Shown: piece by piece, positions 1 through 61,139 of the stretch
How the letters are laid out: each line of letters begins with the position of its first letter
Position numbering within the stretch: the first letter of the stretch is position 1
Source of the DNA: Hypanus sabinus
Lineage: Eukaryota
Length of the DNA stretch: 64,000 nt
Direction of reading: 5' to 3'
NCBI RefSeq assembly: GCF_030144855.1
Contig: NW_026778903.1
Span: 372,001-436,000, forward strand
Program-made: the position numbers and the translations under genes
The notes under the pieces: model-generated
Told to the model about the DNA's origin: nothing
Seen by the model: the letters and a program-made list of their open reading frames with translations, nothing else
Database searches by the model: none

Positions 1-658
1 GAGAGAGGCTGAACATTGGGGTTTTATTCACAGTAGTGTTGGAGACTGAGAGAGGTGCATAAAATTTGAGGGATGTAAATAAGGTGAATACATTCTTCCT
101 AACCCTGAGTTGTGGAATCAAGGAAACGGGGGTTTAAGATGAGAGGAAACATTTAAAATGGAGCACAGGGTTGAGAAAAATCAGCCGCTGTTCAAATGGC
201 AGCACAGACTCAATGGGCTGAATGGCCTTATGCTGCTCCTCTGCCCTCTGTTGTCAAACTGCCCAGCACGGCAATGGGGAAAAGAGCAGGAGGAGGGGAG
301 AGACCCGCTCACTTCTGGGAGTCATTTAAACCTCACCTCGAATTCCCATCAGCACATTAAAGTCCCACGATTCTGCTCTTTTGGAACTGTCCGTCCTAGT
401 GGACACAATCTCAGAATTCGTCACCGGTGGGGAGGTGGACGTCCCGTCTGCCACTGTCTCCTGTCTGAGACTCTCCGAACCTGTCGAACATGATGGGAAC
501 ACCTCAGTGCTGAGCTGCTCTCCCCAGTTCCCCAAGTCTTTTGGGCCAAAGTGCCTGTTCCAAGTCCAGAGTGTCCCTCGTGGCACGGAGAGAATGTACA
601 TCAGAATGGAGTATCAGACCCTCCCTCTCCCATCAGCACTTACCCGATGTGTTGTAGA
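1..658 (+). repeat. Segmental/tandem duplication, copy 1 (continues off the left edge)
   Basis: Base-by-base comparison with 63331-64000 gives 5 substitutions and one 12-bp indel in ~660 bp; offset 63342 after the indel. Confidence 0.97.
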
Positions 659-1253
659 CCTCACAATAGACAGTGTGAGGGATACCCTGGGTGTAGTTCA
701 GGGTGACACCGCCAGCTACCACCCTGGCCTGGCTGGCGATCCGACAGTGGAGTTCGTTGCCTTTGCCTCTGGTGCAGTTATCCCGGAACTGTCGGAGGTT
801 GTGAAGCCGCAGGATCTGGGACCTGGACATGGTGCAGGGACAGCTGAGGGAGATGGGTTTTTCAATGAACTTACAGGGGCCGTGATCACCTGCCGGGAGA
901 GGAGTGTCAGGGTTAGTGGGTTCAGAGGGAGGTCATCCTCCCCTTCATAGAGTGGTTCCTCATACACTGCCCCATCACAGCCCCAGGGTCAGACAAACAA
1001 TGAATCTCTCCCTCCCCCTACCGTCTCATAATACCATACTGGAACCAGATACAAGGTGAAATTCCCTCTACAATGTCGCATCGCCCACTCCATGGGTCAG
1101 ATGAAATGCAGTTCCCTGCAGACTGTCCCATCACAGGGATCAGACACAGAATGATTCTCACTCAACCGTGGACACAGAATCTCCCTCTATGCTACGTTGT
1201 ACTTACGAGCAGCAGATCCGACCGTGAACAACAACAGACAGATTGCGATGGAC
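337..1253 (-). CDS. Cys-domain membrane receptor gene A, 5'/middle part: leader exon 1207-1253, six-Cys domain exon 644-889, stalk exon 337-480; TM and tail exons lie off the left edge
   Basis: Canonical AG/GT sites (tttctcctcag|G..C|gtaagt; ctcccggcag|GT..G|gtaagt; gttcgacag|GT..G|gtgagg) and compatible phases (2-1, 1-1, 1-1). Translation: xSIAICLLLFTVGSAAR-DHGPCKFIEKPISLSCPCTMSRSQILRLHNLRQFRDNCTRGKGNELHCRIASQARVVAGGVTLNYTQGIPHTVYCEVYNTS-GSESLRQETVADGTSTSPPVTNSEIVSTRTDSSKRAESWDFNVLMGIR. The start-codon exon was not found. Confidence 0.8.
644..889 (-). CDS. 246-nt phase-1/1 exon encoding the six-cysteine ectodomain of gene A
   Basis: Open frame, consensus splice sites, and the same length as the homologous exon at 17069-17314. 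Confidence 0.85.
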
Positions 1254-1479
1254 CTGAGGAGAAAGATAGGTCGAGGTGAGGAGTGAACTCTGCAGAATGT
1301 GATCCCACCTCAGACTAGAATTGTCAACAGCGGTCAGTTTAGTCATGAACAGCTGGAACTGTCCAGCCAGTAGCCTGATTTTAAATGTTCCTTTGGGATT
1401 GGATTTAATGGAAAATCATGGCCAAATCGGGGTCAGTCAGGCTGTTCTTGTGTGGTGTCAGTTGCGTGATTTTGACTCG

Positions 1480-1745
1480 ATTTTGTTTTTTGACAAGGTG
1501 GAGGGTGACTGATGGAGTATGGACAGTAGTTATTATCTACATGGATTTTAGCAAGGCCTTTGACAAAGTCCCTGATGGGAAGCTCATCCAGTTTAAGGGG
1601 CGCGGGATGGAGAGTGAATCGGCTGTTTGGATTTAGAACTGGCTTGCCTACATCAGACAGAAGGTAGTGGTTGAGGGGATGTGTTGTGACTGGACGTATT
1701 TGACCAGTGGTGTTGAGCAGGGATCCATACTGGGACCTCAGCTGA
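1480..1745 (+). mobile_element. CR1-type LINE RT fragment
   Basis: Encodes IYMDFSKAFDKVP and SGVEQGSILGP motifs; degenerate. Confidence 0.8.
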
Positions 1746-1939
1746 ATGAAACTGGATGTATGGGTCAATATCCTTGGGGACGATGGTCGATGGAATCCAG
1801 TCCAGGCAAGTGTGCGTTATTGGGTGTTTGTGAGATCATATTTAAAGGACCAGTGCATGTTAATGGCCAGACCTTGCTGAAATCCGTGTCGGCAGCATCT
1901 GCGCACTCGCCCCCTATCGCGTGCGCTCACAGGCATTTC

Positions 1940-3810
1940 AAACGTGATCTCGCTGTGCAGAAACACCGGCTTTCTGCTTCTAGTCATTCCTTGTCAACGT
2001 TCAATGAAACCATACCTTGATGCTGTTTTATCCCCCACTTGTTCAAACCCTTCAACCTATGTTCGTGACACTTCTCACGCTCTGAATTTTTTCAATGATT
2101 TTAAGTTCCCTGGCTCCCACCGCCTTATTTTCACCATGGACGTCCAGTCCCTATATACCTCCATCCCCCACCAGGAAGGTCTCAAAGCTCTGCACTTCTT
2201 TTTCGATTCCAGACCTAATCAGTTCCCCTCTACCACCACTCTCCTCCGTCTAGCGGAATTAGGCCTCACTCTCAATAATTTCTCCTTTGGCTCCTCTCAC
2301 TTCCTCCAAATCAAGGGTGTAGCCATGGGCACCTGCATGAGTCCCAGCTATGACAGCCTTTTTGTTGGCTTTGTGGAACAGTCCATGTTCCAAGTCTATA
2401 CGGGTATCCGTCCCCCTCTTTTCCTTCGCTACATTGACGACTGCATTGGTGCTGCTTCCTGCACGCATGCTGAGCTCGTTAACTTCATTAACTTTGCCTC
2501 CAACTTTCAAATTTACCTGGTCCATTTCTGACACCTCCCTCCCCTTTCTTGGGCTTTCTGTTTCTGTCTTGGGAGATGGCTTATCTACTGATAAGCCTAT
2601 GGTCTCCCATAGCTACCTAGACTATTCCTCTTCCCACCCTGTCTCTTGCAAAAATGCTATCCCCTTCTCACAATTCCTCCGTCTCCGCCGCATCTGCTCT
2701 CAGGATGAGGCTTTTCATTCCAGGACAAAGGAGATGTCTTCCTTTTTTAAACAAAGGGGCTTCCCTTCGTCCACTATCAACTCTGCTCTCAAATGCATCT
2801 CTCCCATTTCACGCACATCTGCTCTCACTCCATCCTCCCGCCACCCCACTCGGGATAGGGGTCCCCTTGTCCTCACCTACCACCCCACCAGCCTCTGGGT
2901 CCAACATATAGTTCTCCATAACTTCCGCCACCTCTAACAGGATCCCACCACCAAGCACATCTTTCCCTTTCTGCTTTCCACAGGGATCACTCCCTATGCG
3001 ACTCCTTTATCCATTTGTCGCCCCCATCCCTTACCACCGATCTCCCTCCTGGCACTTATCCTTGTAAGTGGAACCTGCCCTTACACTTCCTCCCTCACCA
3101 CCATTCAGAGCCCCACCTGTGAGTTGGCTGGTGTGGTATACTGCGTCCGGTGCTCCCGGTGTGGCCTTCTAAATATTGGTGAGACCCAACGCAGACTGGG
3201 AGACCGTTTCACTGAACACCTGCGCTCTGTCTGCCAGAGAAAGCAGGATCACCCAGTGGCCACACATTTTAATTCTACGTCCCATTCCCACTCTGATATG
3301 TCTGTCCATGGCCTCCTCTACTGTCAAGATGAAGCCACACTCAGGTTGGAGGAACAACACCTTATATACTGGCTGGGTAGCCTCCAACCTGATGGCATGA
3401 ACATTGATTTCTCTAACTTCTGTTAATGCCCCGCCTCCCCTTCTTGCCGCATCCTTGATTTATTTATTATTTCCTTTTTTCCTCTCTCTCTCACGACTTG
3501 CCTACTTTCCATCTTCCTCTGGGCTCCCCTCCCCCTTTCTTGCTCCCTAGGCCTCTGGTCCCATGATCCTCCCAACAGAGATCTTCTCCATCTCTGTATC
3601 CCTTTTGCCAATCAACTTACCAGCTCTTAGCTTCATCCCACTTCCTCCTGTCTTCTATCACTTCGGATCTCCCCCTCCCCATACCAGTTTCAAATCTCTT
3701 ACTATCTCTTCTTTCAATTAATCCTGACAAAGGGTCTCAAACCGAAACGTCAACTGTACTTCTTCCTATAGATGCTGCCTGACCTTCTGCGTTCCCCCAG
3801 CATTTTGTGT
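1940..3810 (+). mobile_element. Penelope-like retroelement (RT + GIY-YIG endonuclease), 5'-truncated and frameshifted
   Basis: ORF 1944-2531 has FTMDVQSLYTSIPH, GVAMG and FLRYIDD. ORF 2350-2937 has the thumb region (YLDYSSSHP..CKNAIPFSQFLRLRRICS). ORF 3124-3426 has VVYCVRCSRCGLLNIGETQRRLGDRFTEH. The typical 3' tail (gatgctgcctg...cagcattttgtgtg) follows. Confidence 0.92.
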
Positions 3811-4134
3811 GTGTTGATTCAATGAAACTTCCTGTGACCCAAACCTGGTTGGGCCTCACGGGGAGTGTCCTCTCCACGCCCACAGTGCACACGGGCTTTT
3901 CAAACACGAGCTTCGTGGCCAGAAACGTCAACAGCGCTTCTCCCTATAGAAGCTGCCTGGCCTGCTGTGTTCCACCAGCACTTTGTGTGTGTTGATTGAA
4001 TTTCCACCATCTGCAGATTTCCTCGTGTTTGCCTTTTCAAACACAATCTCGCTCTGCGGGAACACCGGCATTCTCATTCTGGCCCCCGCCAGCTCCTTGA
4101 TGCAATTCATGTGATCCCACCCCCACCACCGCTT

Positions 4135-4454
4135 TACATTAGAATCAGGTTTCTTTATAAAGGTGATATCTGTTGTTTTGCACAACGGTACAGTGTGATG
4201 GCTTAGAAATCTATAAATGATATGGTGTTGTGATCCAATAACAAACAAGAGAAATTCTGCAGATGTTGGAAATCCAAGCAACACATACAAAATGCTCAGG
4301 GAACTCAGCAGGCCTGGCAGCATCTATAGAAAATATCATAGTCAAAATGTCGGGCCGAAATCCTTCAGTAGGTCCTGTTTACCCAATTTGTGCCTGTGAC
4401 TTTTCATGCCCTAACCAATCAGAGTTTTAAATATCTCAATGACTTGACCTCCAG
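4135..4454 (+). repeat. ~320-bp block essentially identical to 24087-24406
   Basis: Direct comparison; the ORF track gives the same 60-aa ORF at 4217 and 24170. Confidence 0.9.
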
Positions 4455-5058
4455 CCAGCCCAGACAGTCTCTTTCCATCCCCTTCCAGAAGTTAGAGATA
4501 CAGAAATGTGACATCACGTACCACCAGACTCAAAGACAGCTTCTGCCCTTCTCTCTTCAGACTGTTGTGTGGTTCCTCAGTGCAGTAGATTGACTCGGTC
4601 TCATTATGATCGGCACTTTATCGTTTGCCTGCACTGCACTTGCTCTGTTCTGCTCCCTGTCATTATTTTACCCTGTTCTATTGTGTAATGATCTGATCTG
4701 CATGAACAGTGGGCAGGACAAGCTTTTCACTGTCTCGGTACACATGACATAATGAACCAGTGCTGATTTCTAATATGATGAAGGCATTCAGGAACCTCTT
4801 AGAAACTAATGTGATTGGGCAGAGAATGGAGGGATTTGGACCATGTGTAGCCAGGAGGGTCCGTTCAGTTATGGGGTTCATTACTGGTTTAATTGATTTG
4901 ACAAAGTATTTTGGGCCACAGTGCCTGTTTGTGTGCTGAACTGTTCTAAGTCTGGAAACCAGAGTCTCCCTCTAGTGGCACGGAGAGAATGTACATCAGA
5001 ATGGTGGCAGTCTGGAGTATCAGACCCTCACGGTACTTCCTCTCCCCTTGGCACTTAC

Positions 5059-5295
5059 CCGACGTGTTGTAGATCTCACAGTAGATGGTGCCAGGGATAA
5101 CCCGTGGTGTAGTTCAGGGTGAGACCAGCAGCTTCCATCCTGGACTGGCTGGCGATCTGACAGTAGTGCCAGTATCCTGGAACATTTGGAGCTTGTGAAG
5201 CCCCAGGCTCTGCTCAGCAACTGGGAGCCAGGATATTGGGCAGGGACAGGTGAGGGAGCTGGTGTTTGGAATGAAATTACAGGTGCCCTGATGAC
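5059..5295 (-). pseudogene. Pseudo-exon B: disrupted copy of the six-Cys domain exon
   Basis: Splice sites are retained (ctcccgatag|GT..G|gtaagt). Reads GHQGTCNFIPNTSSLTCPC..., then a ~22-nt deletion and a compensating 1-nt insertion enclose a TGA (5114-5116), and the native frame resumes as RVIPGTIYCEIYNTS. The downstream intron (4900-5058) is homologous to 535-643. Confidence 0.85.
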
Positions 5296-5469
5296 CTATC
5301 GGGAGAGGACCATTAAATGCTGCTGATATATTAACGCTGTCATCTCCAGGGTCATTCCTGTGATCCTCATCTGGACTCTGTGACAGATCGCCGTTTATTG
5401 GGTATTCGTAACAAAACAAAATCAGTTTAGTCCACTGTAAGGAAAGGGGAGAATGAAGAACAAATGACG

Positions 5470-6260
5470 GAAAATGAACAAAGATGTATTACGGGAAAGT
5501 TACGAGCGTGGATAGAGCATTGGCTCTTGGGTGGAGGCAAAGAGTGGGAATTAAGGCTGCCGGTCTCCAGTGATCTGCACCAGTCAGTTTTGGGACCACT
5601 TCTCTGTACGTTGTATGTAAATAATCTGGATGACGAAATTGCTGATTTTTGTGCCCTCGCTTGCCAATGTTGGGTGGAGGGGCAGATGGAATTGAGGTAG
5701 CAGGGAGACTGCAGAAGAGCTGCACTGATTCACAGAATGGGCAAAGGAATTACTGTTTTCTAAATGGGGAGAGAATTCAAAAATCGGAGATTTTGCTGAT
5801 ATTGGAGATGGATCATTATAATTATCCCCGTAAGTAAAGGCTTGTCTTAGGAGGAGCGTTTGACGGCTCTGGGCTTGTACTCGCTGGAATTTAGAAGAAT
5901 GAGGAGGATCTCATTGAATTCTATCAAATGTTGAAAGGCCAAGATAGAGTGGATGTGGAGAGGATGGAACCTGCAGTGAGGGAGTCTGGGACCAGAGGAC
6001 ACACCCTGAGATGCTCATGTTTAATGGAGATCTGGAGGAACTTCCTCAGCCATACAGTGATGAATCTGTGGAATTTATTGCCGCAGGTGGCTGTAGAGGC
6101 CAGGGTGTATTTAAGGTGGAGGTTCACAGATTATTGATAAGTCAGGACATGAAAGGTTACGGGAAGAAGGCAAGTTAATGGAGTTGAGAGGGAAACGGAT
6201 CAACCACCATCAAATGGTGGCGCAGACGTGATGGACCGAATGGCCTAATTGGTTCCTCTG
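5470..6260 (+). mobile_element. Degenerate CR1 LINE 3' portion
   Basis: SVLGPLL..LYVNNLDD, YEERLTALGLYSLEFRRMR-like and CR1 3'UTR (tgggccgaatggcct..) remnants. Confidence 0.75.
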
Positions 6261-6659
6261 TCTTATGGTCTAAGTCGCCTTGCTCACCACGCCCTCTCCT
6301 CATTACTGCTGTGAGGGAGGAGGTAGCAGAGCCTGAGGACGGACACTCATCATGGACAGAACAGTAGCATAATGGGTAGCAGGTCACTATTACAGAGCCA
6401 GTGACCCGGGTTCGATTCCCACCACCGTCTGTAAGGAGATGTATGTTCTCCCCGTCTCCGCACGGGATCCGATGGGTGCTCAGGTTTCTGGTCTCCTCCC
6501 AGCTTCCAAAAGGGACAGATTTGTCTGGAGTAATACACAGTGCAGGTTTCTCCAGTTGGAAGGGCCTGTGACTGTGCTTTATATCTAAATAAAAATTTAA
6601 AAAATACCTTTTCAGTACAACTTCCAGTTTACCATCAGATTTCTGAATAGTCTGTGAAG

Positions 6660-7560
6660 CTGTGGTCTACCTCACTATTTTCCTCCTTTCTCCTGGTTAT
6701 ATCCCGCTTTGTTGACTGTCCCTGTCAATCCAAATCCCCAATCAACCAGTCCCGATAATACCTTTTCATAACTTGTCCACCACTGATGTCGACTCACTGG
6801 CCTATAATTTCCTGGATTATTCTCAGAGTCTTCCTTAAACAGCAGAGCAACAGTAGCCATTCTCCAGTCATCTGGTACCTCATCTGCTCTAAATATCTCT
6901 GCCAGGGCCCCTGCAATTTTTGCACTTGCTTTCCAAAGGGACACCTTGTCAGGCCCTGGGGATCTGTCCACCCTGACTTGCCTCAGGACAACAAACCCCT
7001 CCTCCTCTGTAATGAGTACAGATTCCACGGGCTCGATGCTGCTTTGCCTCTCTTCCATCGACTCTGTCCACCTCCTGACTGAATTCATATGCCACACGTC
7101 CATTTAACATCTCCCCTCATTGCTTTTGACTCCACACTGATTACCATTCTGATCTTCCAGAGGGCAAATTTTCTGCCTTGCAATCATTTTGCTCCTTCAC
7201 CTTGTCTGCTGGAGCAAGCTCATGCCTTCTTTTAGCAACCTGATTTCTTCTTTAATGTTCTTCTGCATTTCTCCTACTCAACTACCTATCTGCGATGCAC
7301 CTCCTTTTTTTCCTCAACCAGGACAGCAATATCTCTCAAAGCAAGCTTCCCTAAACCTGTTAACCTTGCCTTTTATTCTGACCAGCAGATACAAGCTTTG
7401 TCCTCTGAAAAGACCTCCCACTTATGAAGTTACCTTTGCCAGAAAACATCATGTCCGAATCCACACTTGCTAGATCCCTTCTGATACATCCAAGTTGCCC
7501 TTTCTCCAATTTAGAATGCCAATCCCAGGACCAGAGTTACCCTTTTCCATAATTACCTTG
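6660..7560 (-). mobile_element. Degenerate CR1 LINE ORF2 fragments
   Basis: RSPGPD, VPDDWRMATVALLFK..NPGNYRPVS and SDHNVISF motifs. Confidence 0.75.
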
Positions 7561-8219
7561 AAACTAATGACATTGTGATCACTGGGTACAAAGTATTCCC
7601 CTGCACAAACACGTGTTTTACTTCTCTGAGTTAAACTCCATCTGTAGTTGCTTGATTCAGTTTCCCAGGTCATCTGGAACTCACTATAATGTGAGATAAC
7701 ACTCTTCACTGCCCACTACCTCACCAATTTTGGTGATATGTGCAAAGTTATTTGAACAGGATGAGGGTGTCTGTAGATTGGGTGTTTGTAAACCTGTGAC
7801 GTATGGTATCATAAGCAAAAATGAGGAAATCTGCAGAAGCTGGAAATTCAAACAACACACACAAAATGCTGGTGGAACACAGCAGGCCAGGCAGCATCTA
7901 TAAGGAGAAGCACTGTCCACGTTTTGGGCCGAGACCCTTCGTCGGGACTAACTGAACTGACTAACTGAAAGGAAACTAAATGGACGTTTTGCATATGAAT
8001 TGAGTCAGGACATGGACAGAGTCAATGCAAGAGAGGCAGTTAGTCCTGACGAAGGGTCTCGGCCTGAAACGTCGACAGCGCTTCTCCCTATAGATGCTGC
8101 CTGGCCTGCTGCGTTCCACCAGCATTTTGCGTGTGTTGCACATATGGTCTCATGTCTCATGTTATTTGAACAGGATGAGGATGTCTGTAGATTGGGTGCT
8201 TGTAAACTTGTGACGTATG

Positions 8220-9130
8220 GTCTCCTGTCTGTTCTCACTCCCTAACTGTTTCCAATCATTCTGTGAGCTTGTCTGCACCTTCTCCCTGTGGTTACCCCAG
8301 TTTTAGCCCATCAGAGACATCCTCCACCCCCACTCCCCCCTGCAGTTCCACAAGCAGAATTTACAATTTACCTGCTTCTCCATTTTGATAATTGCTTTAT
8401 TATTCTCACTTGTACTGAGGAACAGTGAGGAACTTTAATTTGTGTCCTGTCCTGTCCTGAAAGATCAAGCCTACATCAGCACATCAGTGCAGTGCAAATG
8501 GGAAACGGAATGCGCAATACTGTTAGAGTTACAGAGAAAATCGGGTGCAGGTAAACAATCAGGGCCACAATGTTCTCATTGGAAGATCGGGAAGTCACAA
8601 GACTCATACCACAGCTCCCACAGTTGCTGCCTGACCTGCTGAATGTTCCCATTATTTCCGGATTACATTTCCAATCTCCATCCCCCACTCCCTCACTCTG
8701 GGCGGAACACTTTAATATAACCATAATATATTGCCATTAATACAAGTTAACTACAATAAATATTTACAACACTGATCCCTCTCACACAGGGAGGGATAGT
8801 TGGTGTTCACATCCCAGAAAGCAGACTTTGCCATTCCCACATCCAATCCTTTGAGAGATGTGTGGAAAGGTAGGAATTACTCCCATGGGATTGTGGATTG
8901 TGTGAAAAGCCTAGGCTTACTATCTGCAGTTGAATGCCTGGAAGCCAGGTTTTACATAACTGACCCATGGGTGCCCATGCACCTAGGGGTCCAGAGTTTC
9001 CCCCATACATCGGATGCCTGGTAGACAAACAACCATCAATTCCAAACGGGAATTGGTTGGCCTGGAATGTCACAGAACTATACAGGCCCTTCAGATCCTC
9101 CTTGCACAGGAGAATTCAACACCCTCCCAT
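8220..9130 (-). repeat. Copy of a locally repeated ~0.6-0.9-kb module (possible terminal exon/3'UTR); other copies at ~11180-11960, 12540-13060 and 37090-38000
   Basis: Shared blocks (cacaacactgatccctctc, gttcacatcccagaaa, ggaatgtcacagaactata), a conserved ..ttccag| acceptor-like site, and a minus-strand AATAAA at 8396-8401. Confidence 0.7.
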
Positions 9131-10011
9131 GAGTTTTTTTAAGGAGGTGACTATAATGATTGGCAACAACAGTGAGGTAGATGTTATGTGCATACAGTTT
9201 GATCAGATCTTTGACAGGGAGAGCTGGTTCATGGGCTCTTGACGTCTGAGGTAAGCTGGTTAATTGGATCCAACATTAACTGGTGATCAGAAGTTGAAGG
9301 TAGAATTGGGAGGTTGCTTTTCTGATTGATGTCTGTTCCTCTGTGATGTATCAAAGGGTGACTCGTGTGATATGATAACAACTGAGTTGTGAATGGTGAA
9401 GATATAATTGGCAGGTTTGTGGCAAAGACAATGTTGATGGTCCTGTGGATGGGAGGAAAGTTGGCTTGGATACAGATCGGAGGGAAAGTTGTGCAGGGAG
9501 AGGCAGATGGAGTTGAATGCAAAGGAGGGCAAGGTGATGTGTTGTGCCGTGATGGAATGGTAGAGTAGACTCAATGGGCCGAGTGGCCTAATCCTGTCCC
9601 TATGTATGATGGTCCAAGTGTAAAAGTGGACTGGCTCCTAGTCTAATGTATGAGAGATATTGGGGTGCAGATCCAAAGCTCGCTGACTGTGGATATGGTG
9701 GTTAAAAGGCTAAACTGGTAAACTCGTTGATAATTTAGTTTATTATTCACACATTTCCGAGGTACAATGAAAGTTTTTCTTCGGCACGTCCGTATGAATC
9801 ATTTCACTACAGCAAGGCAGAACAGGACAACTTGGCACGTGTGCGTGTGTGACGTCCCCTCTGAGTGTTACTATCTATGTGTGTCTCTGTGTCTGTGCAT
9901 GAAGGGGAAAGGGTGTTTGGGGGCAAAAGGAGTCTGTGTGGGAGGTGGGGTGGTGAGATGGGTTTGGGGTGTCAGTGATGGGAGAGGGAGAGGAGAATGT
10001 CAGGTATGTGG

Positions 10012-10370
10012 GATCCCAGCCTGTAACCTACTCCCAGCAATCTGTTATTCTGTATATAAACCCCCCAATCCCCTGGATTAGACCCCAGCCTGTAACCTAC
10101 TCCCAGCGATCTGTTATTCAGTATATAAACACCCTAAGCCCTTGAATTAGACCCCAGCCTGTAACCCACTCCCAGCGATCTGTTATTCAGTATATAAACA
10201 CCCTAAGCCCTTGAATTAGACCCCAGCCTGTAACCCACTCCCAGCGATCTGTTATTCTGTACATAAACCCCCCAATCCCTGGATTAGACCCCAGCTTGTA
10301 ACCCACTCCCACAATCTGTTATTCTATAAATAAACCCCTGAACCCCTCGATTAGACCCCAGAAGGTAACC
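10012..10370. repeat. Minisatellite, 68-69-bp unit, ~5 copies
   Basis: gaccccagcctgtaacc(t/c)actcccagcgatctgttattc... starts at 10081, 10150, 10219 and 10287. Confidence 0.95.
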
Positions 10371-11189
10371 CATTACTGCTGTGTGTGGGGGCACTCCCAC
10401 ACCAGATTCCACCTATGTTGCAGGTGCATTCTCCTGCTCCATCCCTCTGTGTTACTCCCTCCATATGATACAAACAGCTCCCTCACCACCTTCCAAGAGC
10501 TGATGTGGCCCCTGAGGCTGGGGGTCCCAGTCACTCCATTATGAAGTTGAGGGGTCATTGAGCCCTGGGAGATGACCAACCCCTGGATTAGATGCTGATT
10601 TCTAACCCACACCTGATGATGGGTTATTAAACACACTCCCACAGATCTGTCATTCTTTATCTACAACCCTGAACCACCGGATTATATTTCAGCCTGGAGC
10701 TCACTCCCGGGGGATCTGGGGTGTTCCCCAGCCACCATGCCTCTGCCCTCGTACTTCTGGCCTGAGAGAGACTGGAGCGAGACACTGTGGGAGTAGCCGG
10801 GCGGGTGCCTTCTGTCGGCAGTCTGCACTGCAGCCACTGTGGAGGGAGGGGACGATTAGAATGAGTGCGGGGTGCTGATCGATCGGGCAGCTCTGTCCCA
10901 GACAGTGCTGTGCTTCGAGGATTGTTGGAACTGAAAGTGGACAGTGCTGTGTCACACTCTGATTTATTCTGAACCTGCAGCAGTGCACGAACGGCATTGA
11001 GACAAGATTATTCTGATTTTGAGACTGGAGAGAATTGTCGATGGCAATCTGCCTTTTATACTTTTATTAATAGGAAAATAGTGAATACATGTCAATAATC
11101 AGCAGGACATTCCTCTTCCTTAAAAAGTGCATATTTATTGTTATAAATTAATCAATGATAAACTCTGCTGAAAATTACAATGGCAAACG

Positions 11190-11450
11190 AGAGAGTTCTC
11201 TTTAGAACATTACTCCCCTTTTTGCCCCCCCCCCCCCCCAATACACTGGATGCCTGGGAGAACCGTCATTTCCAACCCGGAATAGATTGGCCTGGAACGT
11301 CCACACAAGAGAATTCTCTTTGGAACATTACTCCCCTTTTTGCCCCCCCCAATACACTGGATGCCTGGGAGAACCGTCATTTCCAACCCGGAATAGATTG
11401 GCCTGGAACGTCCACACAAGAGAATTCTCTTTGGAAAATCACTCCCCTTT
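11190..11450. repeat. 111-bp tandem duplication
   Basis: Acceptor-like sites at 11291 and 11402; a 37-aa repeat is visible in the ORFs on both strands. Confidence 0.92.
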
Positions 11451-13059
11451 TTGGCACAAGTGATCAAAAAGGTTCACCACCCCTCATTTCCACCATTGCC
11501 TGATTCTATTCCCAATCTCTTTGCACAGTAACTAACTCCAGGCTGAACACTTTAATAACGTATTGTCATAAATACAAGAATAATTTATAACCATAAATAC
11601 TGAAATTAATATTTATAACACTGATCTCTCTCACACCAGGGGTAGCTTCTGTTCACATCCCAGAAAACTACATCCGTTATTCCCACAGATTTGGGAAAGA
11701 GGCAGGAATTACTTCCAGGAGATCCCGGACTGTGTGCAAATCCCACACCTGGGCTTGCTGAGCTGAGCCAGAGGTGCATACCCACCCAGGGGTCTGCAGA
11801 TTCCCTTATACATGGCACACCTGGGAGATGTGCAATTTACAAGGGACGATCGTGGATCCGACTGGCCTTTGGCTGGGAAAGTCACAGAAGTTCCCAGATA
11901 CAGGCACTTCAGCTCATCTTTGTAGAGTTAATTCCTGTCCATCTAATTTGCCTGAGCTTTTTAAGGTGGTAAGGTTTTTTAAGGCAGGGGGTTATATGGG
12001 AGGCAGGGTTTGAGGGTTGGCACAACCTTGTGGGCCAATGGGCCTGTAAAGTGCTGTATTATTCTATGTTCTACGTAAATAAAAGGATCAATAAGGGGAG
12101 TGAGGTAGATGTTATCTACGTACACTTTAGTAAAATCTTTGATTATGGAGGACTGGTCTGGAAGGCACGTGGAGTCCAAAGTGAGCCAGATAATTGGATC
12201 CAACATGGCTGCTGATCAGAGTTTGAATGTTGTGGTGGGCGGATTCTTGTCTGATTAATGTCTGACCTGTGGTTTACCACAGGGTACCAAATGTGTGATT
12301 TGTTACCAACTGATTTGTGAAGGTTGCAGGTATGATTGGCAGGTTTGTGCTAAGACTTTGGTGGTGTTGTGGAGGGTTGGGAAGGTTATCAAGAAATCAC
12401 CTTCATTGTCCAACAGAACTACCAGGATGAACGATATCTTTCAGTTTGCTGGCAGCTTCCCTGAGTCAGGGGGATCACAGATGGAGTGTTTTCAAATGGA
12501 AATGTTTACTCCGTGTCTCCCCCCCACAGATGCTGTCTAACCAGCTGAGTGATTCCACCATTTCCTGATTACATTTCCAATCTCCATTCCCCACTCCCTC
12601 ACTCTGGGCCGAACACTTCAATATAAAAATAATATATTGTCATAAATACAAGATAACTACAATAAATATTTACAACACTGATCCCTCTCTCAGCAGGCAG
12701 GGCTAGTTGGTGTTCACATCCCAGAAAACTGACTTCATCCTTCCCACATCTAATTCCTTAAGAGGTGTGGGAAAGGCAGGAATTAGTCGCATGAGATTTT
12801 GAACTGTGTGAAATGCCTGTACTTCGTGTACACAGTCCAATGCCAGGGTTTACATAGGTGACCCAGGGATGCACGTACACCCAGGGGTCTAGTGTCCCCC
12901 CCCACCCCCCATACATTGGGCGCCTGGGAGAACCATCAAATCTAACCCAGAATAGGTTTGGCTGGAATGTCACAGAACTATACAGCACAGATAAAGGTCC
13001 TTCAGCTCATCTTTCCACAGGGGAATTCCTCCCCTCTGCAAGTGTTTTTTTGAGGAGGT

Positions 13060-13580
13060 AACTATAAGAATTGACAAGGTTGGCTAGGATACAGATCGGA
13101 TGGAAAATTGGGTCGATAGAGACAGATGGAGTTTAATACCAATGGGGACAAGGTGATGTATACTGGGATGTCAAATTCTGGTAGAACATCCAGAGTTTAT
13201 GATGGGACACCGGGGGTGTGGAACGGAGAGTCAGTGGGATACAATTCCAGAGACCCCTGAAAGCAACTACACCATGGGACAGGATGCTGAAGAAGTTGTA
13301 CAGTGCAGTTCCCTTCTGAGATCAGGGGATGGAATGGAAAAGCTGGGATGTTATGTTAGAACTTGACAAGATACTGGTCAGACTGCACTGGGATCACTGT
13401 GTACAGTTCAGTTGACAGCACTACAGGAAGGCTGGGGTCACATTGGAGGGAGAGCCGAGGAGATACACTATGATGTTGTTGGGATCGGGTGGTGGGGGTT
13501 TAGTCATGTGGAGTGATTGGACGGGTTGGAGCAGATTCCTCTGGAGTGTCGGAAGCTGAGGGGAGACCTGATGGATGTGC
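13060..13580 (+). mobile_element. Old CR1 3' fragment (also duplicated at ~38000-38490); its antisense strand supplies the end of gene C's last coding exon
   Basis: YKSWDVMLELDKILVR.HW.HCVQF and LE.RKLRGDL remnants. Confidence 0.7.
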
Positions 13581-16500
13581 TGCTTGAGGTATCAACACTG
13601 CTGACAGTGGGATCTCCCTGTGCGTCTCCATCTCGACCGATCTTCTCCCGCGTTGCCACCTGGAGGTACAACAGAGGGGAAGGTCACTGAGAGTCTGTTC
13701 ACTGAGCAACAGAGATGGGTCACGGAGGCGGTGAGCGATGTGGGGCACTGGAGGGACAGTGAGTGAGTTGAGAGAACTGAACACTAGGATTCCCCAAGAA
13801 GCAACGAGGTCACTTACCGCAGAATGAGCACCAGGACACCAATTAAGACTACCAGCACCACTGTAGAATGGAAATGTTACAATTAGACTGGTTTGACCAG
13901 AAGCATACTCAATCGAAATGGGAAAGTCTGATACCCATCCTCCTCCCCACTCCCATGTCTGCATCAGCATCCACACCCATCCCGGCCGTACCTCCATCCA
14001 TCCCATATTCCCACTTACTCCCCATCTTCACTGCCTTTTGTATCTCTCCATCTTGTCTCTAAATTGCAAGTACAGGGTTCTGTAAACATGGTGTCACCGG
14101 TAGACGGGATGGTGAAGAAGGTGTTTGACACACTGGCCTTCATCAGTCCAGGCACAGAGCACAGAAGCTGGAACATTACATTGCAGTTGTACAAGACACT
14201 GGTGAGGGTTCGTTTGGAATATTGTGTTTCTAGTTACTTTGAATGAAAGGTGCCACTCCGGAGGTCAGTCCAGAAGTTCACAATAACTACTGGGAATGAA
14301 AGTGTTAACAAATGAGAAGTGTTTGATGTTTCTAGGCCTGTATTTGCTGGAGTTCAGAATGATGAGGGAAGGGGGTCTCATTGAAGCCTCCTGGATACAG
14401 AAAGTCCTGGGACGCAGGGAGGACCTTCCCATCAGCAGGAGATTCCAGAATCCAGGAAACAGTGACAGGATAAAGGGACACACACAAAATGCTGGAGGAG
14501 CACAGCATCTATGGAAAAGAGTAAACAGTCAACGTTTCAGACCGAGACCCTTTATCAGGAATAGTTTACTCTTTTCCATAGATGCTGCCTGGCCTGCTGA
14601 GTTCTACCAGCATTTTGTGTGTGTTGCTTCGATTTCCTCTTGTTTGTGACAGGATAAAGGGAAGTTACTTTGGAAATCAGATGAGTAATTTCACCATTCT
14701 GAAAGTGTTGAATTTATGAATTGAGACAAAATCATTAGATGGACAAAGTAGCCACTGAGTGTATGTACATGGTCTCTGCTGCTGTCACACATCCACTTCA
14801 AGGTTTGACATCTCATGTGTTCAGAGATGCTCTTCTGTGCATCACTTGCAATGTGTAGCTTTTTGACTTACTGTCACCCTCATGTTGGCTTGAACCAGTC
14901 TGGCCATTCTCTTCCGACCTCTCTCATTAAAGCATTTTCACCCACAGAACTTTGCTCACTGGATTTTTTTTTTGTTTTGTGTTTTCACATATTCTGTGTA
15001 AACCCTGAATAATGCTGTGTGAAAATGCCAGGTGATCAGCAGTTTCTGAGATACTCAAACACCCTGTCTGGCAACAATCAGTCCACACTTTCTACCAAAG
15101 TACATGACCATACACTTCCCTACACCGTGTTCCATCTGCAACCTTCTTTGCACATTCTCCTAATCTGTCCAAGACCTTCCACACACTTCTTGTTTCCTCA
15201 ACACTACCTACCCCTCCACTTATCTTCACATCATCCAAACCTGGCCACAAAGCAATCAATTCCCTCAAGCTAATTATTGATATACGAGAAAAGAAGTGGT
15301 CCCAACATCAAAACTTATGGAACACCACTACTGACTGGCAGCCAAGCAGAAAAGGTCTCCCTTTATCCCCCCCCCCCCATAATTCTTTGCTTCCTGCCAG
15401 TCAGCCAATCTTCTACCCATATCAGAGCCTTTCCTGTAATACCATGAATTTTTATCTTGTTTAACAGCCTCTTGTGTGGCAGCTTATCAAAGGCCTTCTG
15501 AAAATCCACTGACAACACCCACTGACTCTCCTTTGTCGATTCTGCCTGTTATTTCCTCAAAGAATTCCATCAAGATTTCCTCTGAAGGAAACCATGCTGA
15601 CTTTGGCCTATTTTATCACGTGCCTGCAAGTATCCAGAAACCTCATCCTGAACCTTCCCAACCAATGAAGTCGGGATAACGGAATGATCATTCCCAATGC
15701 CTCAGTGTCTTCAGAACCCTGGTGTATCGTCCATGGTCCAGGTGACATATCTACCTGCAGACCTTCCAGCTTCCCCGTCACATTCTCATTAGAAATAGCA
15801 ACACTCACTTCTGCACCAACACTCTCAGATTTTTGGCATACTGCTGGTGTCTTACACACTGAAAATGCATGCAAAATACTTGATTTGATTGGCAATTTAT
15901 TTGCCCCCCATTACTACTTCTCCAGCCTAATTTTCCATTGGTGCAATATCCACTCTTGTTTCTCGTGAAGGTGGGAGGATGGGACTGAGAGAAAAAAAAA
16001 TCAGCTGTGCTAGAATGGATCAGAGGATTCAATGGGCTGAATGGCCACATTCTGCTTCTACATCCTAGAACAGCTCACTTCAGTCTTCAGGAATGGAAGG
16101 GGAAGGCTCACCTGGAATTACTATCGACACACGCACCCTCGTAGTGGTGTCCTCCACCTCTCTTCTGTCTGTCCTGGTGGTCACTGGCTTCCGAGATGTC
16201 ACCTTTGGTGGCGTAGACAACTGGTCTACTGGTGTCCTCTGCCTGGGACACTCCATGCCTGCAAAACACAGCGGGTACCCCTCAGAGTCCTTAGATCTGC
16301 GTGTGATTCTCTGAGGTTGGACGAGTCCTGTGAGGAGGAGTGGTGAGCTCGGTGCAAAGGGAGCAAGGGGTGAGCCTGTCCACCAGAGCTGGTCTGTCCC
16401 AGGACCCAGAGTCACAATCACACACCGGGGAAACATGCACCTTGGGGCACAAACCAACAGAGCCAGTCCCATTGGCTTGCATTTGTTCCGAAACCTTTCC

Positions 16501-19348
16501 CATCCATGTACCTTTCTGAGCAACTTAAAAGTTGTTATTGTACCTTCATCAAACACTTATTTTGGCTGCTCATTCCAGGTATTGACCACCTGGGTGAAAA
16601 TGCTGCTTAAAACTCTGCATAACCCGGGAAGAAAGGCCATGTATATTCACCACATCCATGCCCCTCGTCATGATAAATAGATACAGAGATAGACAGAAGA
16701 CAGCCACATCATTTACCCCATTGTCGAGATATCTAATACTAGAGGGCAGACATTTAACCAAAATTGGTAACTTTTAATAAAATTTTTGGAAATCGCAGTT
16801 AGTGATGGACTGCTGGAATATGCTGCCAAGGGTGATGGGGAAAGCAGATACAATATAAGGGTTAAAGTGTCTTTAAATAGACACATGAATGTATGGTGAA
16901 TGGACGGATATGGACATTGTGCAGACGCATTTAATTAAGAGTTCTAATTTCAAGAGGGAGCACAGAATGGCTTTCATGGATGGGAGATGGGAGACAGGGG
17001 AATCACGGATATTAAACTATCGGAATAGTGAGATCCCGGAGTGTCGGACCCTCTCCCCCAGCACCTACCTGACGTGCTGATCTCACAGTAGATGGTGCGG
17101 GGGATAACCCAGCTGTAGTTCAGGACAACGCGGTCAGCATCCACTCTGGCCTGGGTGGCGTTTTGACAGCAGAGTCCGTTCCCCTCCCCTCTCGAGCAAT
17201 TGTCTCGAAAGACTCCTGCAAGGTTGTGAAGGTGCAGGCTCTGTGCACCAGAGGGTAAACAGGGGCAGCTGAAGGAGCTGGTGTTGGGAATGAGATCGCA
17301 GGTGCCCTGCTGACCTGTTGGGAGAAATATGTTCCTGGACAATGGGGCCGGGGGAGGGGGAAGGACGTCAACACCCTTAACTCCCCACATCCCATCACAC
17401 ACCCCCGGGGTCAGACACAGAGTGAAGCTCCCCCCACACCGTCCCATCACACACTCCCGGGGTCAGACACAGAGTGAAGCTCCCTCTACACAGTCCCATC
17501 ACACACTCCCGGGGTCAGACACAGAGTGAAGCTCCCCCCACACCGTCCCATCACACACTCCCGGGGTCAGACACAGAGTGAAGCTCCCTCCACACCATCC
17601 CATCACACACTCCCGGGGTCAGACACAGAGTGAAGCTCCCTCCACACCGTCCCATCACACACTCCCAGGGTCAGACACAGAGTGAAACTCCCTCCACACC
17701 ATCCCATCACACACTCCCGGGGTCAGACACAGAGTGAAACTCCCTCCACACCGTCCCATCACACACTGCCGGGGTCAGACACAGAGTGAAACTCCCTCCA
17801 CACCGTCCCATCACACACTGCCGGGGTCAGACACAGAGTGAAACTCCCTCCACACCATCCCATCACACACTGCCGGGGTCAGACACAGAGTGAAACTCCC
17901 TCCACACCGTCCCATCGCACACTCCCGGGGTCAGACACAGAGTGAAGCTCCCTCCACACCGTCCCATCGCACACTCCCGGGGTCAGACACAGAGTGAAGC
18001 TCCCTCCACACCGTCCCATCGCACACTCCCGGGGTCAGACACAGAGTGAAGCTCCCTCCACACCGTCCCATCGCACACTCCCGGGGTCAGACACACAGTG
18101 AAGCTCCCTCCACACCGTCCCATCACACACTCCCGGGGTCAGACACAGAGTGAAGCTCCCTCCACACCGTCCCATCACACACTCCCGGGGTCAGACACAG
18201 AGTGAAGCTCCCTCCACACCGTCCCATCACACACTCCCAGGGTCAGACACAGAGTGAAGCTCCCTCCACACCATCCCATCACACACTCCCGGGGTCAGAC
18301 ACAGAGTGAAGCTCCCCCCACACCGTCCCATCACACACTCCCGGGGTCAGACACAGAGTGAAGCTCCCTCTACACAGTCCCTTCACACACTCCCGGGGTC
18401 AGACACAGAGTGAAGCTCCCTCCACACCATCCCATCACACACTCCCGGGGTCAGACACAGAGTGAAGCTCGCTCCACACCATCCCATCACACACTCCCGG
18501 GGTCAGACACAGAGTGAAGCTCCCTCCACACCGTCCCATCACACACTCCCGGGGTCAGACGCAGAGTGAAACTCACTGCACACCGTCCCATCACACACTC
18601 CCGGGGTCAGACACAGAGTGAAACTCACTGCACACCGTCCCATCACACACTCCCGGGGTCAGACGCAGAGTGAAACTCCCTCACACCGTCCCATCACACA
18701 CTCCCCGGGTCAGACACACAGTGAAGCTCCCCCCACACCGTCCCATCACACACTCCCGGGGTCAGACACAGAGTGAAACTCACTGCACACCGTCCCATCA
18801 CACACTCCCGGGGTCAGACGCAGAGTGAAACTCCCTCACACCGTCCCATCACACACTCCCCGGGTCAGACACAGAGTGAAGCTCCCTCCACACCGTCCCA
18901 TCACACACTCCTGGGGTCAGACACAGAGTGAAGCTCCCCCCACACCGTCCCATCTCACACTCCCGGGGTCGGTCACAGAGTGAAACTCCCTCCACACCGT
19001 CCCATCACACACTCCCGGGGTCAGACACAGAGTGAAACTCCCTCCACACCGTCCCATCACACACTCCCGGGGTTAGACACAGGGTGAAGCTCCCCACCGT
19101 CCCATCACACTCTCCCGGGGTCAGACACAGAGTGAAACTCACTGCACACTAGGGTAAACTTACCAAGAACAGATCCGACTGTCATCACCAAGACAGAGAC
19201 TGCGAGGGACCTGCGGAGGGAGAAAGGTTGAGGTCAGGAGTGAGCCGTGGAATCGGACCAGACCTGTCCAGGTGCGGGTTCAGGGCGGCAGGTCCGGTCA
19301 CCCCCTCCCAGGATATTTCACAGCTCCTGTCCCTCACCCACTGAACAT
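13500..19348 (-). CDS. Cys-domain type-I membrane receptor gene C (~240 aa). Exons: 19338-19348 (tentative), 19164-19210, 17069-17314, 16112-16327, 13818-13860, 13500-13659
   Basis: Every internal exon has AG/GT consensus sites and chained phases (2,1,1,1,2); total 723 nt = 240 aa + stop. Protein: MFSGSLAVSVLVMTVGSVLG|QQGTCDLIPNTSSFSCPC..FRDNCSRGEGNGLCC..VVLNYSWVIPRTIYCEISTS|GLVQPQ..S/T/P-rich stalk..RVSIVIP|VVLVVLIGVLVLIL|RWQRGRRSVEMET..PITPHD*. Signal peptide, 20-aa hydrophobic TM and basic stop-transfer residues are present. An alternative first exon is 19796-19815 (MERASE-R). Confidence 0.8.
14800..15070 (-). mobile_element. Tc1-like DNA transposon remnant (related piece at ~47700-47890, + strand)
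   Basis: ttggcttgaaccagtctggccattct..ctctcatta matches the reverse complement of ttaatgagagggcagactggttca at ~47735; the family assignment is from recall. Confidence 0.5.
15350..15970 (-). mobile_element. Degenerate CR1 RT fragment
   Basis: Reverse strand shows DFQKAFDKLPH-like and KLEGLQVDMSPGP remnants. Confidence 0.7.
17069..17314 (-). CDS. 246-nt phase-1/1 six-cysteine domain exon of gene C
   Basis: tttctcccaacag|GT...TCA G|gtaggt; open frame; aligns with exon 644-889. Confidence 0.88.
17385..19150. repeat. 52-bp minisatellite, ~34 copies, filling the intron between gene C's leader and Cys-domain exons
   Basis: Unit acaccgtcccatcacacactcccggggtcagacacagagtgaagctccctcc; period checked at 17461 and 17513. 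Confidence 0.98.
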
Positions 19349-19989
19349 GCAGAAAACACAGAAAATCCTTCAGGAAACAGACACAGCAAAGAGCTAGGAG
19401 ATAAAGACGTAAAATTCTTGAGAGAACACAGTCAGTCAGACAGCAGTTCGGCTGCCTGAGGCTAATCAGTCAGTGGCTCGTCGATGAAGGCGAGCTCTCA
19501 GCCAGACTGCCTCAATCTAGACAGTCATCCGGAACCCTGCCCTCCCAAAACGTCTCTTTCTCTCACTCTCCCTCTCTCCGTCTCTATCCCTCCCTCTCTC
19601 TCCCTCTCTATTTCCCCATCCTTCTCCCTCTCCCTCCCCCCCCCCCCAGTTGACTGCCTTTCAATTTCTCTCTCTCTCCACAATCGGAGCACAGACAGAC
19701 AAATGAATATCTCCTCGCGCAAAAGCGACTCCGTGCCCTTCACTTCTATTACTACATCTTCTCTCCAGTAGCAAAGCGCCGGGTCCGACAAATACCTCTC
19801 AGACGCTCTCTCCATACCCCGTCACCGATTCTGTTGTCTGCCTCTCAATTTCGCTCCCTCTCTCTCTCTCACTTTCCACAGTCGCCGCGCCGACTGACGA
19901 ACCCTTCTCTCTACGTCCATGCCGGACGGGCTCAGCCCCGTATAATTCTACAGTATTACTCTCTCGCCCTCCCAAAACCTCCCCTATCT

Positions 19990-21415
19990 CTCCCTCGCCC
20001 TATGTGTCCCCTTCTCTCTCCCTAACTCTCGCTCCCTCTCCCTCCCTTCCTCTCCTTCCTTCTCACTCCCTCTGTCCCTCTCGCTACCCCTGCCTCTCCT
20101 CTCAATCTCTCTCCCTCTTCCTTACTTCCTCCTATCCCTCCCCCTCCCTCTCTCTCTCCCTCTGTCACTCCTTCTTTCCACCCCTCTCCCTCCCTCCACT
20201 GCCGCTCTCACTCCACCTCTCCCTCCCCTCTCTCTCGCCCTCTCTCACCCTGACTCTCCATGCCCCAACACCCCTCACTGTCTCTCTCCCTCTTTTCTCC
20301 CTTTCTTTCCCTCGCTGCCCCCTTCCCCTTTCTCTCTGTGAGTGTGTCTGTGGGTTGTGTGTTTGGTGTGTGAGTGTCTGTAGGTTGTGTGTTTGGTGTG
20401 TGAGGGTTTCTGTAGGTTATGTGTTTGGTGTGTGAGGGTTTCTGTAGGTGTGTTTGGTGTCTGTAGGTTGTGTATTTGGTGTCTGTGGGTTTCTGTAGGT
20501 GTGTTTGGTGTCTGTAGATTGTGTGTTTGGTGTCTTGAGTTTCTGTAGGTGTGATTGGTGTCTGTAGGTTGTGTGTTTGGTGTGTGATTGGTGTCTGTAG
20601 GTTGTGTGTTTGGTGTGTGAGGGTTTCTGTAGGTTGGGTGTAGGTTGTGTGTTTGGTGTGTGAGGGTTTCTGTAGGTTATGTGTTTGGTGTGTGAGGGTT
20701 TCTGTAGGTTGGGTGTTTAGTGTGTGAGGGTTTCTGTAGGTTGGGTGTAGGTTGTGTGTTTGGTGTGTGAGGGTGTCTGTAGGTTGGGTGTTTGGTGTGT
20801 GAGGGTTTCTGTAGGTTATGTGTTTGGTGTGTGAGGGTGTCTGTAGGTTGGGTGTTTGGTGTGTGAGGGTTTCTGTAGGTTGGGTGTTTGGTGTCTGTAG
20901 ATTGGGTGTAGGTTGTGTGGTGTCTGTAGGTTGTGTGTTTGGTGTGTGAGGGTTTCTGTAGGTTGTGTGTTTGGTGTCTGTAGGTTGTGTGTTTGGTGTG
21001 TGAGGGTTTCTGTAGGTTGGGTGTAGGTTGTGTGTTTGGTGTGTGAGGGTTTCTGTAGGTTGGGTGTTTGGTGTCTGTAGGTTGTGTGTTTGGTGTGTGA
21101 GGGTTTCTGTAGGTTGTGTGTTTGGTGTGTGAGGGTTTCTGTAGGTTGTGTGTTTGGTGTGTGAGGGTGTCTGTAGGTTGGGTGTTTGGTGTCTGCAGGT
21201 TGGGTGTTTGGTGTCTAGGTTGGGTGTAGGTTGTGTGTTTGGTGTCTGTAGGTTGTGTGTTTGGTGTGTGAGGGTTTCTGTAGGTTGGGTGTTTGGTGTC
21301 TGTCGGTTGGGTGTAGGTTGTGTGTTTGGTGTGTGAGGGTGTCTGTAGGTTGGGTGTTTGGTGTGTGAGGGTTTCTGTAGGTTGGGTGTTTGGTGTCTGT
21401 AGGTTGGGTGTGGTA
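19990..21415. repeat. CT-rich low-complexity tract (19990-20335) followed by a GT-rich compound minisatellite (20335-21415)
   Basis: Modules gtgtgtttggtgtgtgagggtttctgtaggtt and gggtgtttggtgtctgtaggtt repeated in varying order. Confidence 0.95.
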
Positions 21416-21974
21416 TGTGAGGACAGGACAGAATTAGAGTGTTTTCTTAGGAGTGAAGGGGGCTGGGAAGCTCAGTTTTTTTTAAATAATCAGGGGTGTT
21501 GGTAAATCACAGAATATTCCCCTGGGTGGGGTGGGAGTAGAAAATGGACTGCAACACTGTCTGGTATGGGGGGTGGGGGGGCTACTGCACAGAGAGTTGT
21601 GAATCTAGACGGCTCCATCTGGGGTGCAAGCCTACAACTTACCAAGACATTTTCAAGGAAAGGCAGCGTCCATTATTAAGAAGCTCAGGATTTCTCGCAC
21701 AGTCCAAAGATGTAGATAAATAGATCATTATAAATTGTCCTGTTATTCGGCGATGGTTGAATAGGTGGATTACTGAGAGTGCGGCTGAGTTGTATCTTGA
21801 AATAAATAAAAATTAAACAATATTTACCATCCTCATTACCTTCATAAATCTGTCACCCTTTCCCCGCATTCCTCTCTGACCCTTCTCACTTTACTACTAC
21901 CTCTGACCTCCTGACCCTTTCCACCTCCCTACTCACTCTCTGCCATCCTCTGTGCTACCTCCACTCCTCTTGTG

Positions 21975-22145
21975 GCCTCGCCTGCCTCTCCCCCTCCCTC
22001 TCTGACCACCCCCTCTCCCCCTCCCTCTCTGACCACCCCCTCTCCCCCTCCCTGACCACCCCCTCTCCCCCTCCCTGACCACCCCCTCTCCCCCTCCCTG
22101 ACCACCCCCTCTCCCCCTCCCTCTCTGACCACCCCCTCTCCCCTC
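21975..22145. repeat. C-rich short tandem repeat (accaccccctctccccctccct(ctct)g)
   Basis: Direct inspection, ~6 units of 23-27 bp. Confidence 0.9.
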
Positions 22146-30960: not shown

Positions 30961-31229
30961 GCAAGTTAGAAAAGCAACACACTCAAAATGCTGGTGGAAC
31001 ACAGCAGGCCAAGCAGCATCCACAGGGAGAAGCACTGTCAACATTTTAGGCCGAGACCCTTCGTCAGGACTGACTGAAAGGAAAGATACTAAGAGATTTG
31101 AAAGTAAGAGGGGGAGGGGCACAATAACAGCAGTCCGCCCGGGGGCAAGGCGATCCCTCGGCTCGCGCTCTTCCCCTCCTCTTGCTCCTCTGGCTCACGC
31201 TCTGCCCCTCCTGCCCCTCCGGCTCGCGC

Positions 31230-60910: not shown

Positions 60911-61139
60911 GAACCATTTTGTCTTTAAAATTAATATGAAATTATACACTTGGTGTTGTTATGTTTATTTTGTCTAAATGCAAACAAGGCCACAGCAGCC
61001 ACTTTATTCTGATCAACATGCAAACATCGATTTTGCAGGCTTTAATGCATTGAGTTGCTGCAAATGATTGTCTGGTTAGATATTTGCATTCATCAGGTGT
61101 AGGTAAACGTGGCCACTGAGTGCAAATTCATCACTCACT

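Follow-up and report, generated by a model that had tools for sequence, protein, structure and literature searches.

Among living vertebrates with antibody-type immunity, the cartilaginous fishes are the oldest, and to our knowledge their non-rearranging surface receptors have barely been charted. Here we analyse a 64,000-nucleotide stretch of the Atlantic stingray, Hypanus sabinus (contig NW_026778903.1, positions 372,001 to 436,000; hereafter the window), part of a 1.76-Mb scaffold, which carries on its minus strand two related genes (A and C), a broken exon of the same kind (B) and part of a further copy (A'). We propose that these loci belong to a real, tandemly duplicated gene family encoding small single-pass type I membrane glycoproteins, detectable in batoids only and bearing a six-cysteine head that resembles a very diverged variable-type (V) immunoglobulin (Ig) domain, a reading that, taken as a whole, we judge to have slightly better than even prospects.

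Among described proteins, the TIM family, CD8 and CD7 offer a similar build, with a compact Cys-rich head, a Ser/Thr/Pro-rich stalk, a transmembrane helix and a short tail, and TIM heads likewise hold six cysteines. The heads of these proteins are, however, clear V-set domains of about 110 amino acids that are found by Pfam, whereas the head described here spans 82 amino acids and matches no profile. From CD28, CTLA-4 and ICOS the present proteins differ in showing no sequence similarity to them, in having neither a G strand nor a conserved Trp, in probably forming three intradomain disulfides rather than two, and in combining a long mucin-like stalk with the absence of a tyrosine signalling motif. 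VpreB provides a further likeness, namely a V-like domain that stops after strand F in the manner of a V gene segment that has not been joined. It differs in being a soluble protein that retains the canonical V-set residues and receives its missing strand from lambda5, whereas the stalk here is not modelled as a strand. Domains of the Ly6/uPAR type hold 8-10 cysteines with a C-terminal CC-x4-CN pattern.

Results

Three copies of a cysteine-rich exon

The sequence-only reading of the window had described three homologous phase-1 exons on the minus strand, two of them open and one broken, and both translation and tblastn agree with this description:

644-889, minus strand: Cys exon of gene A, 246 nt, open, 80% amino acid identity to Hemitrygon akajei P0023
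5059-5295, minus strand: pseudo-exon B, delimited by nucleotide alignment and tblastn
17069-17314, minus strand: Cys exon of gene C, 246 nt, phase 1-1, predicted to encode the whole folded ectodomain (tblastn, exact coding sequence, AlphaFold2)

Minus-strand phase-1 translation of 644-887 (A) and 17069-17312 (C) yielded open 81-residue peptides with the motifs quoted in that reading, and translation of 5059-5293 (B, minus strand) a related but interrupted peptide. When A and C were used as tblastn queries against the window, these three copies were the only ones found, all other matches having E > 0.1; A and C matched each other at E 2e-22 with 54.5% amino acid identity, and B matched the two queries at E 1e-9 to 1e-10. 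The alignment also bears out the six conserved cysteines and the NC[ST] and NY[ST] sequons reported for A and C, all of which fall among the 42 invariant positions that the two exons have in common. A seventh Cys is present in C, and N-glycosylation sequons number four in C and three in A. The dN/dS ratio between the two exons is 0.42.

Pseudo-exon B has kept its splice sites; nucleotide alignment revealed a 22-nt deletion, by which the C-x-RG-x-GN stretch is lost, followed by a 1-nt insertion, with an in-frame stop between the two lesions. A leader, stalk or transmembrane exon was looked for near B and none was found.

Gene C and its start

Six exons of gene C could be joined (21728-21643, 19210-19164, 17314-17069, 16258-16112, 13860-13818 and 13659-13500) into a 729-nt coding sequence that equals the RefSeq protein LOC132385341 (P0022; 242 amino acids, Hypanus sabinus) residue for residue, P0022 in turn matching the window at 100% exon by exon in tblastn. 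Besides the Cys exon listed above, they are:

21643-21728, minus strand: RefSeq first coding exon (MIYLST...KMSW), 86 nt, ending in phase 2; 100% tblastn match to P0022 residues 1-29
19164-19210, minus strand: mini-exon, 47 nt, AG/GT sites, part of the P0022 coding sequence
16112-16258, minus strand: stalk exon (G-MECPRQ...VSIVIP), 147 nt, Ser/Thr/Pro-rich with one Cys; its acceptor is the sole one that reproduces P0022
13818-13860, minus strand: transmembrane exon, 43 nt, uncharged helix, part of the P0022 coding sequence
13500-13659, minus strand: tail exon with stop, tail of about 52 amino acids without Tyr; tblastn and P0022 coding sequence

Gene C is thus already annotated, though nameless ("uncharacterized protein"), and the view that annotation had missed these genes does not hold for it; genes A and A' and pseudo-exon B are without a protein model in RefSeq. 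The proposed layout of mini-exon, Cys exon, stalk, transmembrane and tail exons was borne out, with 47-nt mini-exons in C and A and a transmembrane exon of 43 nt in C and 46 nt in A'. Three of the four gene C junctions predicted from sequence match RefSeq, and the remaining one needed correction, the stalk acceptor having been placed at 16327 where the correct start is 16258. Acceptor 16327 is in frame, yet it inserts 23 residues seen in no homologue, and in all homologues ...TSG joins x-ECPRQ directly.

Several candidate starts lie upstream of the mini-exon, in addition to the RefSeq first exon:

19338-19348, minus strand: start proposed by the sequence-only reading (ATG TTC AGT GG / GTGAGG), in phase, no homologue support
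27041-27102, minus strand: second copy of an MGFGAV-type first exon, GT donor, 86% to P0016 residues 1-21, in phase with the mini-exon
32043-32104, minus strand: MGFGAV-type candidate alternative first exon, GT donor, phase 2, 100% to the first 21 residues of P0016 (LOC132385339 X1)

The ATG at 19348 lies in phase and lacks homologue support, RefSeq instead beginning at 21728, and other species conserve neither of these two starts. What Mobula, Pristis and Hemitrygon have in common is a first exon reading MGFGAV...ILR; its two copies here lie 8-13 kb upstream of the gene C mini-exon and represent either alternative promoters of gene C or orphaned first exons. Between the RefSeq first exon and the mini-exon there is also a TG-rich complex tandem array (20337-21422, periods of 22-107 bp), which gives rise to a spurious 412-codon minus-strand open frame of PT/HQ repeats.

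A family of uncharacterized batoid proteins

Using a profile built from A and C, we searched exhaustively among 1.84 billion representative proteins and obtained 15 proteins at E <= 0.001. Eleven of these are true relatives (E 3e-43 to 2e-9), and the other four are long repetitive proteins. The relatives come from Hypanus sabinus, Hemitrygon akajei, Mobula hypostoma, M. birostris and Pristis pectinata, and the ten that were looked up are all named "uncharacterized protein" in RefSeq; these models have in common with gene C the six-Cys head, the stalk motif, the transmembrane helix and the short tail. Three further members, from Hypanus and Hemitrygon only, emerged when the search was repeated with an alignment of 13 family sequences. 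On these sequence searches the range of the family is apparently limited to two orders of batoids, Myliobatiformes and Rhinopristiformes. The other Hypanus sabinus models in the family are LOC132385339 and LOC132385355. The latter (P0021) appears to consist of two tandem family genes fused in one 367-amino-acid model, and in P0006 (LOC127587166) an otherwise normal family member is preceded by a 350-residue Gly/Ala/Arg-rich N-terminal extension; each of the two models is probably an artefact of annotation.

A literature search on six family LOC identifiers returned no paper that mentions any of them. In Pfam, neither the exons nor six full-length proteins nor any of 17 domains scored above threshold, the PDB sequence-profile search with the family gave 0 matches at E <= 10, and the top score in the ESM Atlas feature search (0.52) was at the level of noise.

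Conservation was assessed in alignments of 13 family members and in a wider set of 17. The cysteines common to the family are spaced C-x10-C-x-C...C-x9-C...C; five of them are invariant over the 13 to 17 members, and the sixth, in strand F, is replaced in 2 of the 17, all six being kept in the 13-member set. Also invariant are an Asp, a Glu and a handful of hydrophobic positions. Just past the head, the C-type copies carry an extra Cys (ECPRQ) at a site where the A-type copies have Ser. No charged residue is present in the transmembrane helices. The tails are short and variable, with basic residues close to the membrane and no conserved Tyr. The order of mini-exon, Cys exon, stalk, transmembrane and tail exons recurs at the sawfish locus L001.

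The predicted fold of the head

AlphaFold2 modelled the head from the 17-sequence alignment as an all-beta domain of nine short strands (mean predicted local distance difference test score, pLDDT, 86.9; predicted template modelling score 0.76). When the whole stalk was included the head was retained, and the stalk had a pLDDT below 50; being disordered in the model, the stalk does not supply a further strand.

Searches with this model returned no significant structural match. In Foldseek, the best match in the PDB was the N-terminal barrel of V-ATPase B (E 0.086, template modelling (TM) score 0.47), with non-significant matches to the Ig domains of CTLA-4 (TM score 0.52) and CD28 (TM score 0.58); the best E-values in AFDB Swiss-Prot (0.19), the AFDB clusters (0.047) and the viral BFVD (0.03; phage capsid proteins, and no adenoviral protein) were likewise non-significant, as were unnamed clusters with TM scores of at most 0.64 in the ESM Atlas shape search. 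Two VIA runs of the head model also gave no significant match; in VIA-wide, about 35 of the best 50 rows were V domains, whose alignments ran from end to end over 76-83 residues. The claim that the head fits no recognised family therefore stands, Pfam, PDB profile and Foldseek searches all being without a significant match: on these comparisons, the head, encoded by one exon, fits no named family.

At the level of sequence profiles, none of the Ig, V-set (PF07686, clan CL0011), I-set or C2 entries of Pfam matched the exons, full-length proteins or domains at E <= 10. A true V exon nearby in the window does match Pfam V-set (E 3.5e-7), unlike the family heads, and hhalign of the family against that exon gave a null result (probability 0.2). 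Two cysteines, 58-60 residues apart, are located at the modelled B and F strands. There is no conserved Trp, strand C holding Leu/His, and the Tyr precedes the F-strand Cys by one residue instead of two, a departure from the V-set core. The gene layout is nonetheless of the Ig type, with a 246-nt phase 1-1 exon following a leader split over two exons, and the Cys exon ends 4-6 residues past the YCE motif. Overall, the head is most likely a very diverged V-type Ig-like sandwich ending after strand F. The earlier suggestion of a highly divergent Ig fold without the C-strand Trp is upheld in part, by the phase 1-1 exon, the V-like model and the lack of a conserved Trp; no Ig profile or significant structure match came to its aid.

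Gene A, copy A' and a 63-kb duplicated unit

Within the window, gene A is represented by its mini-exon, Cys exon and stalk exon only, its transmembrane and tail exons lying beyond the window:

1207-1253, minus strand: gene A mini-exon, 47 nt, no ATG
337-480, minus strand: gene A stalk exon (GSESLRQ...), with Ser in place of the C-type Cys; acceptor placed by P0023

No start exon of gene A was found by similarity search with the Hemitrygon and Mobula first exons. Positions 1-658 of the window are found again at 63331-64000 (97.5% identity), which marks a segmental duplication whose period is about 63.3 kb, so the next unit starts there. Exons of the corresponding copy A' were identified as follows:

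63679-63822, minus strand: A' stalk exon (tblastn), coordinates moved from gene A by a fixed offset and approximate to a few bases
62729-62774, minus strand: A' transmembrane exon, 46 nt
62524-62545, minus strand: A' last coding exon, a 7-residue tail (WCGMCGS) followed by a stop

The ending WCGMCGS plus stop is the same as that of Mobula birostris P0002. The unit contains an A-type gene, pseudo-exon B, a C-type gene and a V-set receptor gene; it is present at least twice, with relic exons, and the window spans almost exactly one unit. One such relic is:

38452-38645, minus strand: relic C-type tail exon, frame-broken; blastn 79% to 13300-13747, tblastn in two pieces

The surrounding 38151-38686 (minus strand) is a 79%-identical copy of the gene C tail exon and its 3' flank with no other family exon nearby, and is a remnant of a lost paralogue.

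The V-set exon of the unit (44113-44640, minus strand), 27 kb from the family gene, matches both V-set and Ig_3 in Pfam (E 3.5e-7) and ends in a J-like G-x-G-T-x-L-x-V motif; no relative of it was detected at E <= 0.001 when 5.8 billion proteins were searched by word index. Read by eye, long frames resembling reverse transcriptase or ORF2 of long interspersed nuclear elements occur on both strands (1400-3400, 30341-31666, 39342-41109, 52000-54950 and 57800-62150), and inserted transposons account for a large share of the DNA between genes and within introns, including that directly upstream of the gene A mini-exon.

A minisatellite in intron 1 of gene C

Nearly all of gene C intron 1 is taken up by a tandem repeat:

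17390-19149, minus strand: 52-bp minisatellite, 34 copies with 94% internal matches (Tandem Repeats Finder)

Each 52-bp unit has CTGAC, which fits the branch-point consensus, and one AGCT, and the sense strand of the array is rich in G. A pattern search gave 34 unit matches, confined within the window to gene C intron 1, with a degenerate form in gene A intron 1. The same intron in the sawfish (L001 17581-17887) holds 5.9 copies with a consensus identical at 49/52 positions, the three differences all being C/T transitions; between sawfish and gene C the coding exon is 74% identical and other alignable intron pieces 70-73%. Rfam had no match in 13000-22000, and the RNA fold of three units was no better than that of shuffles (z +0.4).

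Discussion

Taken together, these results point to single-head, mucin-stalk surface glycoproteins that are probably Ig-derived. The signal peptide would be split over two exons, with the mini-exon providing the hydrophobic core and the cleavage region and the cut falling after it. The head would be held by three intradomain disulfides and carry 3-4 N-glycans, and the Ser/Thr/Pro-rich stalk would be extended and O-glycosylated. In C-type proteins the stalk Cys (ECPRQ) may covalently link two chains, like the membrane-proximal Cys of CD28 and CTLA-4, whereas A-type proteins, with Ser at this site and a 7-residue Cys-rich tail, could be palmitoylated or bear a glycosylphosphatidylinositol signal.

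No immunoreceptor tyrosine-based activation or inhibitory motif (ITAM or ITIM), conserved tail Tyr or charged transmembrane residue was found in the members examined; the charged transmembrane residue or ITIM/ITAM that marks paired activating/inhibitory receptors is thus absent. With an uncharged helix and such tails, the protein would not by itself recruit an ITAM adaptor or a phosphatase. It is therefore probably a binding partner, be it a ligand, a co-receptor or a molecule of adhesion or shielding, that does not signal on its own, a ligand or co-receptor being more likely than a signalling receptor. The earlier idea of a lineage-specific immune receptor is accordingly supported as to lineage, by the batoid-only relatives, but less so as to receptor, given the lack of a signalling motif. 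An immune role is a possible reading of the genomic context, namely birth-and-death evolution within the 63-kb cassette shared with the V-set receptor gene.

A different account of the head, to which we grant a lesser though real chance, is that it represents a new extracellular beta fold unrelated to the Ig superfamily, the V-like strand order being due to convergence or to an artefact of the model. The end-to-end alignment of V domains in the VIA-wide rows argues against this, as do the placement of the first and last strong cysteines at modelled strands B and F and the single-exon phase 1-1 domain after a split leader, which is the usual Ig-superfamily layout. We regard it as quite improbable that these genes are mis-predicted or in decay and yield no functional product: pseudo-exon B, the relic tail exon, a gene A with neither start exon nor RefSeq protein, RefSeq models that look fused or padded (P0021, P0006) and the loss of the last Cys in two homologues would all be in keeping with decay, but open frames, canonical splice sites and the six cysteines are retained across stingrays, devil rays and sawfish, the dN/dS value points the same way, and AlphaFold2 reached high confidence from 17 sequences only.

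Slimmer still is the prospect of an unrecognised member of a characterised family (CD28/CTLA-4, TIM, CD3, Ly6/uPAR or adenovirus E3). The weak structural matches to CTLA-4, CD28 and ICOS, the ECP motif after the domain, reminiscent of the CTLA-4 stalk Cys, and sub-threshold Adeno_E3 matches (E 0.001-0.02) could be read in its favour; yet there is no sequence match to these families and no MYPPPY, YxxM-type motif or three-finger Cys pattern, PF06040 is touched under its cut-off by 2 of the 17 members, and BFVD yielded no adenoviral protein. Adenovirus E3 was rejected, the best PF06040 score being 19.5 bits against the curated 25-bit cut-off. Ly6/uPAR was rejected on the spacing of the six cysteines, the absence of a Pfam UPAR_LY6 match and the absence of three-finger proteins among the fold matches listed. 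Membership of CD28/CTLA-4 was set aside as well: there is no FG loop or G strand, gene C has no tail Tyr, and the stalk Cys occurs in C-type copies only.

Building on the preferred reading of a diverged V-like head, a more far-reaching proposal, which we consider improbable, would make it a V domain without J: ending after strand F, the head would need a strand donated by a partner, much as VpreB depends on lambda5, or by a second chain, it would have been co-amplified with the V-set receptor bearing a transmembrane lysine as a ligand-receptor pair or as subunits, and the G-rich, deeply conserved 52-bp array of the leader intron would be functional at this locus.

Since the genes are already in RefSeq, the family is not undiscovered DNA; it is new in part, being unnamed and having no Pfam entry, no solved or confidently matched structure and no literature. 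What emerges is a ray-specific family of surface glycoproteins, conserved as well as expanding, without Pfam model, solved relative or paper, whose genes share a duplicating cassette with a V-set receptor gene. Whichever view of the fold proves right, a domain definition is merited and current RefSeq models need correction. If the head is not Ig-like, it would constitute a new extracellular fold; if it is indeed a V domain minus its last strand, it would show a limit of Ig fold reduction and, with that strand truly absent, would provide a natural case of strand complementation outside the pre-B receptor.

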